The translations under genes and the position numbers were made by a program. DNA of 64,000 nucleotides from Rhodosorus marinus CCMP1338 (lineage: Eukaryota; Plantae; Rhodophyta): positions 3,100,001-3,164,000 of the forward strand of contig JAMWBK010000002.1 of the NCBI GenBank assembly GCA_029953675.1, read 5' to 3'. Below the pieces are notes generated by a model. It did not search any database. It worked only from the letters and a program-made list of their open reading frames with translations, and was not told the origin of the DNA. Of this stretch, positions 2,932 to 8,467 are shown in pieces (the first letter of the stretch is position 1; each line of letters starts with the position of its first letter).

Positions 2932-3802
2932 ATGATGACCTTTGTGAACGTTTCTGGGAGGGTTTTCAGTCATCGGTGTTCAACGGTAACAGATGACAGA
3001 CGGAGAACGAACGTGAGAGTGCGTCAGAGGTAAGGTAGCTCAAAATCTGGGCTTTCACGTGCAGTTTTTTAATTTTGGCACAACTGATAAAGCTAGCGGT
3101 TCGGGCTAGGAGGGACTTCGGCTTTCCAGAGGCGGGCGAGGGTGAGAAACAGCAGGTCGATGCCTTCCAGAAAGCGCGACAGGATAGTGGTCTTGAAAGG
3201 ACGATATATACGATTGTTCCATTGGATGATAATGGAGTACCCATGGTTCGGGTTTTGATAGTTGGCTCAGCCGAGGGGGATCTAGAGCTCGCAAAGTTGA
3301 TCAAGGACAACCCATCTGTGACTGGTCTTTACTACACATGCGACAGAGGAGAGGCAGTGTGTGATGTCGAGATGAGCAAAGTGGCCAACACCGTACCGGC
3401 CAAATCGTCCGATGAGGAGGCCTGGATTGGGTAGGAATTTAGCACCAGCTCTCCCAAATACACTGTGGGCGGTTCAAAAATCCTCCATGTTTGTACTTGA
3501 TGAGGAGAGGGCCCTCTAACTTTGTGTCCTTGCGTTTTGTGTAACACGGCTTCAGGTTCTGCATTTGGGCCAAAGTAAACATTGTTTTCTTGGGGGCTGG
3601 TAAGCAGGTCTCGAACAGGGACAAAATTGAAAAGAATCTGTCCGAACATGGTGTGACATTCTACGGCTCTGATGTCTCACAAGCCCTTGTCGACGATACA
3701 ATAAGCTTGGACTCCTGCTTGCAAGCACCGATCGAGCAGCTCGAGGAAGCCTTACCGGCCTTGAGACATGCGGCGGAGGAGCTCACTGCAAGAGGTGACT
3801 AG
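2932..3802 (+). CDS. Putative plastid-targeted ~221 aa protein with a divergent PurD/GARS N-terminal (pre-ATP-grasp)-like domain and no ATP-grasp domain
   Basis: Exons 2932-3029, 3110-3430 and 3556-3802 sum to 666 nt in frame. The N-terminus MMTFVNVSGRVFSHR is transit-peptide-like. RVLIVGSAEGDLELAKLIKDNPSV and DEEAWIGFCIWAKVNIVFLG..LSEHGVTFYGSD parallel PurD KVLVIGSGGREHALAWKL and DHEALVAFAKENNIDLVVVG..FEAAGIPVFGP. An alternative last exon via a GT at 3800 is possible. Confidence 0.7.
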
Positions 3803-4188
3803 TAGATCGTATGGAAACTTTTCTTTTCGATAATGCAAAACTGACATTAACCTAGCGATGAGCGCAATGGCGCACCATTCTCCAAGAATTTATGGCTTCC
3901 AGGAAGTTCAGCCGTAGAGGAGAATTCATAAGAGCAGTATACAACAAACTAGGTTTCGACAAATTAGTAAATATAGCACGATAAATAGTTCCCTAAGTAA
4001 GCTATTCACTTGTTCGGCGTCTGCAGTAGGCGCTGACGAAAGTACGTTGCGCGCCCCAAAACTGCAAGTCCGCATCGAGCTTGAAGGTCTGCACGTGTTT
4101 TCTTAGGGCGCAGTACGAAAAGGCGGGATCCCCACGTGCGAGGGATAGCGTTGCCACTCCACAGAATACGGCACGCTGTACATGGAAA

Positions 4189-5002
4189 CTAATTTTTTAG
4201 TGCTTCCGTGTTCTTGCTCTCGCGCACAACTTCGAGGTACAGCTCGTGCACTCTCGTATCATCAGTTAGCTCCGGGTGAAAAGTACAGGCGATCATGTTG
4301 TTCTCGCGAACGAGAACCGCTTTCTCTCCAAAACTCGCCAAGATTTGGACACCCTCTCCAACCGCGTCAATAGAAGGTGCTCTAATGTTGATTGCGTGGA
4401 GCTTCTCGCCCTTCCAGAATTCAGACAGGACGTCGGTTTCGAAGGAATCAACTTGCGACCCGTAAGCATTCCGAGTTACTGTTACATCCATTGTCCCAAG
4501 CCGGGGTAACGTGTCATACCCTGTCACATCTTTTGCCATCAGAATGCATCCTGCACAAGTACCAAAGCAGGCCAAACCTAGAGTTGGTGCAGTGCGAGCA
4601 CATGAGCATACGAAAAAGGGAAAAAATTCAAAGTAATCCGTGTGGTAAGGTCCTTACCGTCAGCTATCATTTTTTTTAGAGTCGGCAAGATGTCCCAATC
4701 CCGCAGCAGTTTTCCGATGGTTGTGCTTTCCCCTCCTGGAATAATCACACCATCAATCCCCACCAAGTGCTGAGGTGAGACAATCATTTGAATAGCGCAT
4801 AACAAGCTTAGCCTATGTACAACAACACTTCCGCCGTCCGGTCAAAACAAGTCTCTGCAAAAGCAACGCGTACCTCCACCGACCTGATCGGAACCGCGTG
4901 CGCACCAAGCCTGCCCAGCATTGCAGAGTGTTCGGCAAAGTCCCCCTGTAATTCAAGCACTCCGATTTTGAGATCCTCGTACATGTTCACGTTCCTGCCC
5001 AT
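4189..5002 (-). CDS. PDX2: Pyridoxal 5'-phosphate synthase glutaminase subunit (PDX2/SNO)
   Basis: Exons 5002-4874, 4769-4658 and 4577-4189 give 209 aa. Motifs: IGVLELQGDFAEH, PGGESTT, FGTCAG (catalytic Cys), RNAYGSQVDSFE, IRAP and FHPEL (His-Glu). Confidence 0.95.
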
Positions 5003-7063
5003 CTTTCTTGAAACTACAAGCAACCGACTCAGAAGCCAGCAAACTCCCAAAAAACCACGCCAACCGGAAGAAACAAGAAAAGGCCAAATGAACTTTTTCC
5101 GGTACTTGTCTCCAGTTCAGACCACTCAGCGCAGGGTATCAACAGCCAAACTCGCTCGATCCCGCGCTCTTAAACTTCTGTCTAGAGCTTTGACAGCTTG
5201 TCTACTGGCAGCAGCAGTGTGGACAGCCTCCATGAAAAACGGTGGGCCTTCCATTCCTCATTCCTCACACGGGAAACGAGCCTCAAATATTTTGATACAA
5301 TTTACAAGTTCATATCCTATTCGGCCATTTTCGCCACTCACTTTTAAGAATTAAATATATATTTGATAGGTCTGTGTTGGAATGGGTGAGTCAACCGGGT
5401 ATTTCAGTTTAGCGTAGTATGGTTGGCTTAAACGAGAATTTTGATTGTATACTTACAGTTTCGTTCTGCCAATAGAGGGCGTATTTGGATCTTTTGCTGA
5501 CTTGATTGGTGAGAGCTGATGTTTCCTGTTATTATGTATGAACGGGCCGAGGAACCGGTGATTTCTCTAGTTGAGCTGCGGGAAAGCTGACCGGTTCTCG
5601 TATGATGGGAACTCCTACATGATCACAACGATTTTTTCACGAATATCATGTTAAGAACGGCAAAGCCTTACCCGCTCCCGATAGGCGTTTGGAGCTGAGG
5701 AAGGGAGATCGTCAAGGGAACGAGCAAAGCTTTCACAGCAGACAGTAAATGATCGTGCCCCCGAAGCGGCCGACGAATCTCATCGTCGGCCAGCAGTTCC
5801 CCGTTTCACAGGCGACAGGGGAAATACAACATCCGCGCCTACAGAGAGCTGAAGCAGATTCTTTTACACGGCAACCTCTGGCCGGAATTTCATCGCTTAG
5901 TCCAACAGCGCGCCCCCCTTCCTGAGGATCCCAGCAACCTCCCCGGTGCAAGAGAGCCGCGGCGATTGACTCTTGATCTGACGCCAAGGGCTCCATCCAT
6001 TAAATTTCAATGTTTATTCGCTTTTTGGAAATATGTGGCCACCTTTTGCTCAATACCGTTCGATCTTCAAAGTCGATTACATACCCCTAATATTTTTTAG
6101 CGCAATGTTAGTCAAATCCTAGAACGTTTTACTATGATATATTTATTTTCCGAGGAAGCCGGCCATTGTTCAACCCCTCATTGTCCGCGTTTCTCGCTGC
6201 ACTCACTTCGAGTTTTTTAGTAATATTTGCTTACAGGCTTTCCGCGAGGGTCTAGAACTGGCCCAGAAACCAAGCAAACTCCCGAGAGTCCTACATCCGA
6301 AACGGATCTTTTGGACAGCTGTCCCATCTCCCGCGGGGAGAAAATTTCAGTTAAGAAATATTTTCATTTAGTAAAATTTCTTGTGGCCAAAGAAGCAATC
6401 TTGGAAGAACCCTTTATCGGATTTCTGGGGACGCTCCATACAATTTTCTTATCTTGCACCTGATTATATTTATGAAATTCTAGTTGAACCTGTTGTACAC
6501 GATAGGAAGGATGGCGATCCATATATCTCCGCTACTTGTCCTGCTTTTGGGGGGCTCAAATCAACCGTGGGGACCGGTGCAAAAAAAAGTTTCCGCCGAC
6601 CCCTCATGAAATGGTCAGAATCTCCGAAAATCTGAAAAATATATATTACTTTTTAACAACCAGTCACGTGAGAATCGCCCTATCCAGATTTCTAGAGGGG
6701 GGTTATTCGAGAATCTCGATCACACGGGTTTGTGGTCCAGACATATTGGATCGAATAGTAAAGGGGTACAACCTCCATATCAAGATTTTCCTGATCTTAT
6801 TTATTCGAAACTATTTTGAACCTCATTTCACTTCAGCACAATAATTTACCCCCCCACCTTCCTAGCTATAGAAAATATCGCTTTTTTAATGGAAATGAGT
6901 AAAAGGAGTGTCGCTTTTCGTGATAGGTTACCCCCGATCGCGCTTGATTGATGGTTTGCTTTTTTAAGGTCATTTTTGATGTTTTCTTCCCTGCCATAGA
7001 GGTTTTCTGTAGAAGCTCGTGGAGGAGGGCCTGGGGATTGTGGAGTAGGAAATTTCGGGGGGA

Positions 7064-7315: not shown

Positions 7316-8467
7316 ATGGATCAGGTTGGTTTTGTCGGTGGATTGGGGCTTGCGCCTGCTGGTACGAAAGCTACTGCGAGGACTTGCAGGATGCAGAGGC
7401 CGTCGCGCGTGGCCCCTGCGCATAGGGCCCGTCGGTCTGCTCTGGTGAAGATGTCCGCAGCAAAGGACGCGGCGACAGGAGGGCCAGTGGAAATCAGCAG
7501 CACGGGCGAGGTTCAGAGTACTCAGCAGAGGCTCAGGGTTGGAGGATTCATTGGTCTGTGGTATGTTTTCAACATTGTGTACAACATCTCGAACAAGACA
7601 GTCTTGAACGTCTACCCCTACCCGTGGTTCGTGGCTTGGATTCAGCTTGTCATCGGAGCAGCGTACGCGATATTGGTTTGGGCTACAAGATTGCGAAAAA
7701 TGCCAAATATCAACACGGATCTGATCAAGTCGCTCATTCCAGTCGCGATCTTCCACAACGTCGGTCACGTCGCCACCGTGGTGTCGCTCGGCGCTGTAGC
7801 AGTTTCTTTCACTCATGTGGTCAAAGCTATGGAGCCGTTCGTAAACGTTGTTGCTTCCGCGATCATCCTCAAGTCTGTTTTCCCGATCCCGGTTTACCTG
7901 TCCCTCCTGCCGGTGGTTGGAGGAGTGATCATGGCATCCGTTACCGAGGTGTCCTTCACTTGGATGGGTTTCATGTCAGCAATGACCTCCAACTTTGCTT
8001 TTGTCGGACGTAACATCTATTCGAAGATGGGAATGGCGTCGACCAAGGACGAGAACTTGAACGGTGCGAACCTTTTCGCAGTCATGTCGTGCATCGCCGT
8101 TGTTCTCCTCGCACCTTTCCCGTTCATTATGGAAGGAACGAGTTTTATCACCGGATGGAAAGCCGTAACAAGTGGAGCAGGGGCGGCTATCACTTCTGCT
8201 AAGTTGGCGCAGACGATAGGGATCTCGGGACTTTTCTTCCATATGTACCAAGAGGTTGCGTTCCTCGCCCTTGACAGTGTACATCCGGTTACGCACTCAG
8301 TTGCCAACACAGTGAAGCGAGTTGTCATTATCGTCACTTCGATCATCGTATTCAAGAACCCTGTTACCCAGGCGAACGCGCTCGGATCTGCTATTGCGAT
8401 CGTTGGTGTTTTGCTGTATTCGTTGATCAAGAACTACTATGCCGAGAAGGAAGCTAAGAAGGCATAA
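7316..8467 (+). CDS. TPT: Plastid phosphate translocator (TPT/PPT/GPT family), intronless
   Basis: 383 aa ORF with transit peptide MDQVGFVGGLG. Family motifs: WYVFNIVYNISNK, AVSFTHVVKAMEPF, VHPVTHSVANTVKRVVII and multiple hydrophobic helices. The exact substrate subclass cannot be resolved by eye. Confidence 0.93.
   Translation: MDQVGFVGGLGLAPAGTKATARTCRMQRPSRVAPAHRARRSALVKMSAAKDAATGGPVEISSTGEVQSTQQRLRVGGFIGLWYVFNIVYNISNKTVLNVYPYPWFVAWIQLVIGAAYAILVWATRLRKMPNINTDLIKSLIPVAIFHNVGHVATVVSLGAVAVSFTHVVKAMEPFVNVVASAIILKSVFPIPVYLSLLPVVGGVIMASVTEVSFTWMGFMSAMTSNFAFVGRNIYSKMGMASTKDENLNGANLFAVMSCIAVVLLAPFPFIMEGTSFITGWKAVTSGAGAAITSAKLAQTIGISGLFFHMYQEVAFLALDSVHPVTHSVANTVKRVVIIVTSIIVFKNPVTQANALGSAIAIVGVLLYSLIKNYYAEKEAKKA

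Follow-up and report, generated by a model that had tools for sequence, protein, structure and literature searches.

Introduction

Glycinamide ribonucleotide (GAR) synthetase, PurD (EC 6.3.4.13), is a four-domain enzyme in which an N domain is accompanied by the B, A and C domains that hold ATP, Mg and glycine. Its N domain (PF02844; structures 2qk4, 2yw2, 2yrw and 1gso) has an alpha/beta fold with five parallel strands and carries the glycine-rich loop G-x-G-G-R-E-H. Here we analyse a nuclear gene of the red alga Rhodosorus marinus CCMP1338, located at positions 2932-3802 of the plus strand in a stretch of 64,000 nucleotides (GenBank assembly GCA_029953675.1, contig JAMWBK010000002.1, positions 3,100,001 to 3,164,000 of the forward strand), which is referred to below as the window. 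Its product of 221 amino acids (aa) appears to consist of a domain of this type that stands alone behind a plastid-type presequence, and a preliminary inspection of the letters of the window, the sequence-only reading, had already pointed at the N domain of PurD.

For the human enzyme (GARS), roles have been proposed for Arg13 and Glu14, the latter being a candidate for orienting the ribose of phosphoribosylamine (PRA); the enzyme-PRA complex is unsolved for GAR synthetase (PMC2978367; PMC8880213). Binding of PRA by the loop, which the sequence-only reading took as established, is therefore a reasonable proposal of the literature, not an established fact. At the junction between the N and B domains of PurD, the Lys of an E-x-S-K motif binds ATP (PMC8880213). 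Literature searches on the Pfam family, on stand-alone pre-ATP-grasp proteins, on the locus tags and on the family motif returned nothing relevant; no description of a stand-alone conserved PurD N domain was found, and the protein family presented here is previously undescribed.

Homology to the N domain of PurD

The relationship to PurD was brought out by a profile of the family to which the window protein belongs. Compared with the sequences of the Protein Data Bank (PDB), this profile returned GAR synthetases as its nine best matches, with E-values of 7.9e-6 for the human enzyme (2qk4), 2.7e-5 for Geobacillus and about 2e-4 for Aquifex, Ehrlichia and B. subtilis. Individually, 16 of the 19 members scanned matched Pfam GARS_N (best E=1.3e-13), and a PF02844 assignment was precomputed for 21 of the 42 matches of the profile search described below. 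Other pre-ATP-grasp families, GARS_A and GARS_C gave no Pfam match in any of the 19 members. With hhalign, the family was aligned to residues 1-108 of E. coli PurD (probability 94.9%, E=4.4e-8), which bears out the earlier alignment by eye of the protein core along the length of the GAR synthetase N domain. The motifs VLIVGSGxRExxLA, F.K...VD.V.VGP[DE] and G[IV]T.F stand in register between the family and PurD.

The structure of the window protein was modelled with AlphaFold from a 41-sequence family alignment without any PurD. The mean predicted local distance difference test (pLDDT) score was 76.6, and most of residues 71-210 scored 91-97. The pre-ATP-grasp fold had been put forward for checking by structural comparison, and a Foldseek search of the PDB with this model agreed with it: the top eight matches were all GAR synthetases, with E from 3.5e-5 to 5.2e-4, 99-116 aligned columns and root-mean-square deviations of 2.0-5.8 A, followed by generic Rossmann-like domains at E of 1e-3 and weaker. 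It should be added that searches of the PDB sequences with one or two sequences returned noise only (IF-2 at E=0.54; FosW coiled coil at E=0.27), that TIGR00877 purD reached E=0.066 with P0002, the ortholog from another Rhodosorus strain, and that AlphaFold run on the two Rhodosorus sequences alone gave a pLDDT of 35. As judged from the family profile, the domain of the window protein is homologous, well beyond chance, to the N-terminal (pre-ATP-grasp) domain of PurD, and its fold is predicted to be the pre-ATP-grasp alpha/beta fold.

Other proteins of the same fold class were more distant. PurT (1kj8, 1kjq), the biotin-dependent 3-methylcrotonyl-CoA carboxylase and pyruvate carboxylase stood lower in the Foldseek list (E 2e-3 to 1e-2), and the Pfam families of PurT, biotin carboxylase, pyruvate carboxylase and carbamoyl-phosphate synthetase had no sequence match in the 19 members, PurD being clearly the closest. 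The NAD(P)-binding Rossmann domain of L-threonine dehydrogenase (TDH; 4yr9/4yrb) resembles the model in its three-layer alpha/beta sandwich, in the Gly-rich loop after strand 1 and in the acidic residue that closes strand 2 (D111 here), with a Foldseek E of about 1e-3. However, it had no profile match and ranked below all PurD matches, and the family loop reads GSGxRE rather than GxGxxG/A.

The family resembles the N domain of PurD in its alpha/beta fold, in which five parallel strands succeed one another as in PurD, and the shared motifs read VLIVGSGxRE in the family against VLVIGxGGREH in PurD, along with F.K...VD.V.VGP[DE] and G.T.F(G/P). In contrast to PurD, its members stand alone without the B, A and C domains and hence without a site for ATP, Mg and glycine. 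The loop G-x-G-G-R-E-H is changed to G-S-G-x-R-E-[L/V/I], P-G-N to (C)-P-D, V-G-P-E-A to V-G-P-[D/E]-R and F-G-P to F-P-H-D; no member has kept the His of GGREH, the Asn of PGN or the Lys of E-x-S-K. What is new in the family is a motif at the N-terminus, an invariant Trp, a plastid-type presequence and, at the C-terminus, a helix or acidic tail. Since the B, A and C domains and conserved N-domain residues are missing, the PurD reaction would be impossible for the window protein, in line with the earlier suggestion of a non-catalytic, repurposed pre-ATP-grasp module. We consider the identity as a PurD N domain, together with the loss of PurD activity, to be very probable.

Gene model and transcripts

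Positions 2932-3802 are a real, expressed nuclear gene. Exon 1 (2932-3029) holds the start codon and residues 1-33, with the first two bases of codon 33; exon 2 (3110-3430) encodes residues 33-140 and takes in the last part of the presequence, what is left of the N-terminal motif, and the first three strands of the PurD-N-like domain; exon 3 (3556-3802) runs from the last base of codon 140 to residue 221 and the stop codon TAG. Both introns are of the GT..AG type, intron 1 (3030-3109) being 80 nt long (GTAAGG...CTAG) and intron 2 (3431-3555) 125 nt (GTAGGA...TTCAG). The joined exons form an open reading frame (ORF) of 666 nt, 221 codons plus stop, whose product is 100% identical to the NCBI hypothetical protein NDN08_008274 of Rhodosorus marinus, a gene of exactly 871 bp on JAMWBK010000002.1. 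The three-exon model of the sequence-only reading was hence correct. The transcript-derived ortholog P0002 (MMETSP0011, 223 aa) from the other Rhodosorus strain, about 90% identical to the window protein, confirmed the two splice junctions and has its stop, too, directly after ...TARGD.

In a further transcript from the MMETSP strain, P0003, intron 2 is kept, and the stop is that of P0002 and the window gene. P0003 is a 'complete' ORF of 123 aa that corresponds to window positions 3412-3802; its start lies within exon 2 in a different frame, from which it crosses intron 2 and enters exon 3 in frame. In the window strain this frame stops in the intron at 3519.

The window protein ends 36 residues past the N-like domain. 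The 3' flank (3803-4188) is without coding potential, and many stop codons occur in all three forward frames of 3803-4190. Beyond it, about 390 bp downstream of the studied gene, lies a convergent gene on the minus strand (4189-5002) of the PDX2 type (SNO glutamine amidotransferase), interrupted by one or more introns, with two exons that match Pfam SNO at E=7e-29 and 7e-8. The stop-filled flank and the convergent gene leave no room for ATP-grasp domains. The prediction that no ATP-grasp domain follows was thus upheld, as the transcripts P0002 and P0003 stop at ...TARGD and the downstream sequence is without ATP-grasp-like stretches. Moreover, tblastn with E. coli PurD (from NC_000913.3) against the whole window gave no match with E<2, and accordingly no purD lies within it.

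Domain layout of the Rhodosorus protein

The product may be divided into a basic N-terminal presequence, an acidic alpha/beta domain of about 110 residues and a C-terminal helix of about 28 residues. All strings quoted by the sequence-only reading are present: VLIVGS at residues 81-86, GSAEGDL at 85-91, VTGLYY at 103-108, DEEAWIGF..VNIVFLG at 134-153 and LSEHGVTFYG at 168-177. Behind the presequence, FQKARQDSGLE (residues 52-62, positions 3165-3197, plus strand) is the counterpart of the family motif MRDYFGDDGRE, of which only D58, G60 and E62 are kept (3/11); AlphaFold confidence is low here, about 50.

The PurD-N-like domain is interrupted by intron 2. Its first part (residues 79-140, positions 3246-3430, plus strand) includes strand 1 (VRVLIV), the loop, helix 1, strand 2 (VTGLYYTC), strand 3 and the next helix. 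The Gly-rich loop GSAEGDL (3264-3284, plus strand) was aligned by hhalign to G7-N-G-G-R-E-H13 of E. coli PurD; in it the third-position Gly is replaced by Ala, Arg by Gly (Arg being kept in the MMETSP strain, GSAERDL), Glu by Asp and His by Leu. The second part (residues 141-185, positions 3556-3691, plus strand) comprises F141, W144, strand 4 (NIVFLGAGK), a helix, strand 5 (GVTFYGSD) and the helix 178-185; NIVFLGAGK is in register with ..VGPEA.. of PurD and GVTFYGSD with ..FGP... Further on, E101 and K104 of the E. coli E-x-S-K motif align with D186 and I189 of the window protein.

The C-terminal helix (residues 191-218, positions 3707-3790, plus strand), with Cys194-Leu195 near its start, had been called short; it has about 28 residues and is therefore not short, and with pLDDT of 83-96 it is confidently predicted. 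Its AEELTA is the counterpart of the C-terminal AEQLVE of the family. In the AlphaFold model strands fall at 79-84, 103-110 and 126-131 and helices at 88-98 and 135-144, and the long helix 191-218 comes last, the predicted order of elements being strand, helix, strand, (helix), strand, helix, strand, helix, strand, helix and long helix.

A red-algal protein family

Similarity searches indicate that the window protein is not an orphan but a member of a conserved red-algal family. An exhaustive phmmer/HMMER search of 1.84 billion representative proteins returned 23 matches, mostly of 158-320 aa and aligned over residues ~45-205 with E from 2e-19 to 5e-6; the exceptions were the query itself, three partial sequences (60-123 aa) and one repeat-inflated chance match. 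The latter, P0020, is a repeat protein of 2393 aa with ten matches to residues 165-205, which were inflated by the repeats and do not reflect homology. A profile search recovered 42 clusters (123-341 aa) and no matches between E=1e-19 and 0.01, which marks a sharp boundary around a family of about 45 short proteins of 158-341 aa.

Named members come from red algae only, from four species in three classes: Rhodosorus marinus (Stylonematophyceae), Gracilaria domingensis and Eucheuma denticulatum (Florideophyceae) and Pyropia vietnamensis (Bangiophyceae). The remaining members stem from assemblies of sequencing runs and from metagenomes. The search for orthologs of the same short length, suggested by the sequence-only reading for red algae and secondary red plastid lineages, was thus successful for the former; databases that included EukProt and MMETSP yielded no named protein from a diatom, haptophyte, cryptophyte or glaucophyte, a result that is provisional. 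In their sources the members are annotated as 'hypothetical' or 'uncharacterized', apart from one JGI entry, 'Phosphoribosylglycinamide synthetase, N domain'.

The family consensus reads ...AYSLGETLKDSPLLNSTLMNAMRDYFGDDGREVQDYMKRPRN..G.PMFRVV.VGSGxRE..LA..L..S..V.GLYYCPD...VCD.EM.......VVRFAKW.VADAVFVGPDR......E..LA.AGIT.FPHDVSAAIADG.L.V.ECL.PL...(acidic)..AEQLVE. Conservation was counted by column in the alignment of 41 sequences, with residue numbers of the window protein. D58, G60, E62, R80, Y107, F141, W144, F151, L168 and T174 are invariant (41/41, window protein included), C194 is found in 40/41, L195 in 39/41 and C117 in 30/41. In the loop, G85 is kept in 40/41 and G87 in 30/41, Arg occupies position 89 in 19/41 and Glu or Asp position 90 in 40/41, while His is never found at position 91 (0/41); the position of the PurD E-x-S-K Lys is taken by L, M or I in all 41. 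The elements added to the PurD-like core are MRDYFGDDGRE, the invariant Trp, Cys-Leu at the start of the terminal helix and the C-terminal AE(Q/E)L. MRDYFGDDGRE is present in 39/41 members, the exceptions being both Rhodosorus sequences.

An origin of MRDYFGDDGRE as a relocated copy of the PurD A-domain loop NCRFGDPE was considered and rejected, given a local score of 25 against 22.7 +/- 3.6 for shuffled sequences (p=0.25) and an hhalign result without a second match. Two clades (P0021, P0022, P0023 and P0046-P0052) have 15-60 additional residues inserted between strand 2 and strand 3, are without Cys117 and show a GNS/GNG loop instead of GSG.

Divergence and constraint in Rhodosorus

Within the family, the Rhodosorus protein is, by its aligned sequence, the most diverged member. 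It has GSAEGD (GSAERD in the other strain) for GSGxRE, GAGK for GPDR and YGSD for FPHD, and at the C-terminus a longer helix with AEELTA (...AEELTARGD) instead of an acidic tail ending in AEQLVE / AEQL[VIL]E. As the family consensus for the loop is GSGxRE, the GSAEGDL of Rhodosorus would represent further, lineage-specific decay. In a neighbour-joining tree Rhodosorus grouped with P0005 on the longest branch. P0005, P0008 and P0024 (the latter two too short for the tree) are its closest relatives, and the derived C-terminal helix, common to all of them, suggests a stable derived subfamily.

Identity between the two Rhodosorus strains rises from 68% over residues 1-44 through 85% over 45-70 and 94% across the domain to 97% in the C-terminal helix. 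This comparison indicates that the protein is under constraint.

Plastid targeting

The basic presequence, MMTFVNVSGRVFSHRCSTVTDDRRRTNVRVRQR, is encoded mostly in exon 1 and has Phe at position 4 (MMTFVNVS...). Residues 1-34 have a pI of 12.0 with 9 K+R against 2 D+E, and the remainder of the protein has a pI of 4.4. A start of the M-x-x-F-[V/I] type is common in the family (e.g. MYAFLPPIP, MFAFVPYIP, MAFVSLFVP, MAFATPPP), and no signal peptide ahead of the F motif, the pattern of secondary plastids, was seen in any family member. A Phe-based motif at the extreme N-terminus is the plastid-targeting signal of rhodophytes and glaucophytes (PMC7038456). That the Rhodosorus protein is targeted to the plastid by a rhodophyte F-type presequence would thus seem well founded, as judged by inspection of the N-terminus.

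By inspection, an F-type start (MDQVGFVGG) is also found in a translocator encoded in the window. This single-exon gene of the triose-phosphate/phosphate translocator family (7316-8467, plus strand, 383 aa; Pfam TPT, precomputed) has the N-terminus MDQVGFVGGLGLAP, with the F-type motif.

Function and alternative explanations

Taken as a whole, the data are best explained by a stand-alone, non-catalytic and plastid-bound family of PurD-N-like proteins in which the Rhodosorus protein has diverged the most, and we assign this explanation a probability of about 0.7. Several observations weigh against it. The window protein alone matched Pfam GARS_N with E=0.027 and 15.7 bits at a cutoff of 29.5 (residues 80-183 matched to positions 2-97 of the 100 in the profile; 16.4 bits once the presequence is left off), and the Foldseek E-values of PurD and of generic Rossmann-like domains differed by a factor of only about 10 to 40. 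Several other red algae with sequenced genomes and annotated proteomes were absent from the matches, and the distribution of the family may be patchy or annotation-limited. Furthermore, since nearly every family motif is lost in Rhodosorus, its function may differ from that of the family, and the analyses yielded nothing that points to a ligand or partner.

The submarginal Pfam score of the single sequence, the commonness of Rossmann-like folds and the presence of TDH and other dehydrogenases in the Foldseek list would suit a generic Rossmann-like domain whose likeness to GARS_N is convergent or due to chance. We find this scarcely credible, as four independent tests (profile against the PDB, Pfam scans with 16/19, hhalign and the Foldseek top eight) all led to PurD, with the shared motifs in register. 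An intact PurD function in two pieces, in which the protein would be the N-terminal subunit of a GAR synthetase acting in trans with a separate B/A/C polypeptide, could account for the retained parts of the active-site loops, of which GSGxRE is kept by about half of the members and GP[D/E] by most of them. Yet the His of GGREH (0/41) and the Gly at the fourth position of the loop are missing from all members, although both are identical in the five PurDs aligned (human, Geobacillus, Aquifex, Ehrlichia and E. coli); PGN has become (C)PD, the loop Arg is variable (19/41), and the most conserved features of the family, MRDYFGDDGRE, W144 and C194, have no PurD counterpart. In Rhodosorus the loop is almost entirely lost and the gene is still constrained, so that a split enzyme appears very unlikely. 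Hardly better are the prospects of a decaying relic, that is, a Rhodosorus copy that is transcribed, functionless and heading for loss. This protein is indeed the most divergent member, having lost the N-terminal motif, GSGxRE, GPDR and FPHD, but its frame is intact over three exons with canonical splice sites, all ten family-invariant residues and C194 are kept, and the strains differ at 32% of presequence positions and at only 3-6% in the domain and C-terminal helix. The derived helix common to P0005, P0008 and P0024 likewise speaks against imminent loss.

A new small-molecule function deserves somewhat more weight, albeit it is still unlikely. Under it, the domain and the acidic N-terminal motif would form a new ligand-binding or catalytic site, for instance of a phosphosugar or nucleotide/dinucleotide sensor or enzyme. 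Its attraction lies in the 11 residues of MRDYFGDDGRE, identical in 39/41 members across anciently separated classes, in the conserved polar residues D111 at the end of strand 2 (36/41), R156 after GPD (31/41), H178 (25/41) and D179 (40/41), and in the NAD-binding Rossmann domain of TDH met by Foldseek at E ~1e-3. Nevertheless, sequence matches in Pfam, NCBIfam and the PDB were to PurD only, and the motif region is of low confidence in the AlphaFold model. Moreover, Rhodosorus is without the motif, R89, P154 and H178; such a site is hence not universal and cannot apply to Rhodosorus.

To return to the non-catalytic PurD-N-like family, a mechanism may be sketched in which the protein would be imported into the plastid and lose its presequence, and the acidic product of about 20 kDa would then act by binding, not by catalysis. 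The surface with which the N domain of PurD meets the A and C domains would plausibly be covered by the C-terminal helix and Trp144. The loop Arg/Glu and the N-terminus of the short helix at GP[D/E], which is followed by an Arg, would preserve the PurD anion cradle in most members, where a ligand with a phosphate group or a partner protein, acidic or phosphorylated, could still be held. As the cradle has decayed to GSAEGD and GAGK in Rhodosorus, the conserved remainder would there point to a protein-protein role as adaptor or scaffold. Such a binding or adaptor mechanism is tentative, and we give it rather less than even chances.

In concept, the BADC proteins of plant plastids offer a parallel. 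They are non-biotinylated look-alikes of BCCP that bind acetyl-CoA carboxylase and lower its activity. By analogy, the family might represent another catalytically dead plastid copy of a module from an ATP-grasp system, small and stand-alone, which could replace the real module by binding. No homology is involved, since BADC copies the biotin carrier, not the pre-ATP-grasp domain.

One may speculate further, at long odds, that the family is a red-alga-specific plastid regulator derived from a duplicated PurD N domain. Its relic phosphoribosyl/anion cradle and MRDYFGDDGRE would sense a phosphoribosyl metabolite, or dock on the hand-over of phosphoribosylamine from the amidophosphoribosyltransferase PurF to PurD, and so gate the entry into purine (and thiamine) synthesis. 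If true, entry would be controlled by a pseudoenzyme in a way that is not known from other lineages, and any contact of the protein with purine entry or phosphoribosylamine channelling would bear on the long-standing question of how the unstable intermediate is handed over from PurF to PurD. Otherwise the gain is a modest, lineage-specific one in annotation, from 'hypothetical protein' to 'stand-alone PurD-N-like plastid protein'. Domain relics as small proteins are not surprising in themselves; the family shows cleanly how a module of an enzyme can be put to non-catalytic use, and it offers a well-defined, testable puzzle for red-algal plastid biology.

Gene neighbourhood

As with PDX2 in Rhodosorus, a convergent gene is found downstream of other family members too, at a distance of about 100-230 bp. 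P0051 and P0022, which represent two of the most divergent clades, and P0026 agree in their microsynteny, and in all three loci the gene downstream is the counterpart of the one that follows the Gracilaria gene (blastp E 2e-30 to 8e-57), which argues that their sources are red algae as well.

The upstream neighbour in these contigs is a divergent gene of 221-237 aa that is RuvX/YqgF-like by eye (..LDV..SHISISVSD..GLVVG..), and the downstream one is a convergent gene with the motifs HNYGSVHKSxRDLLxWA and AELYHDLGI. The neighbour genes lie on the minus strand at 4475-5140 and 6705-7109 in contig L001, 3725-4438 and 6137-7036 in L006, 3744-4448 and 6107-6781 in L007, and 6947-7618 in L005; the conserved neighbours gave pairwise blastp E of 3e-27 to 2e-58. 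A heme oxygenase gene and a WD40 gene stand further upstream in L001 and L006. No homologs of the RuvX-like gene, the downstream neighbour, the heme oxygenase or the WD40 gene were found within the Rhodosorus window. The neighbourhood was considered as a functional clue and set aside: being conserved in Florideophyceae-like contigs and missing from the window of Rhodosorus, the microsynteny is a mark of relatedness with no obvious functional link.

Upstream of the studied gene, about 1.5 kb (1360-2931) is without a gene in the NCBI annotation. Two ORFs on the minus strand, 2194-2604 (136 aa) and 2659-2850 (63 aa), neither of which has a Pfam match, lie here in the same frame with three stops between them, a split resembling a small intron; they could be an unannotated gene divergent from the studied gene, or chance. 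Further to the left, 664-984 on the minus strand is an exon of a leucine-rich-repeat protein (Pfam LRR_8, E=5e-18), part of an annotated gene of 335 aa that runs off the left end of the window.

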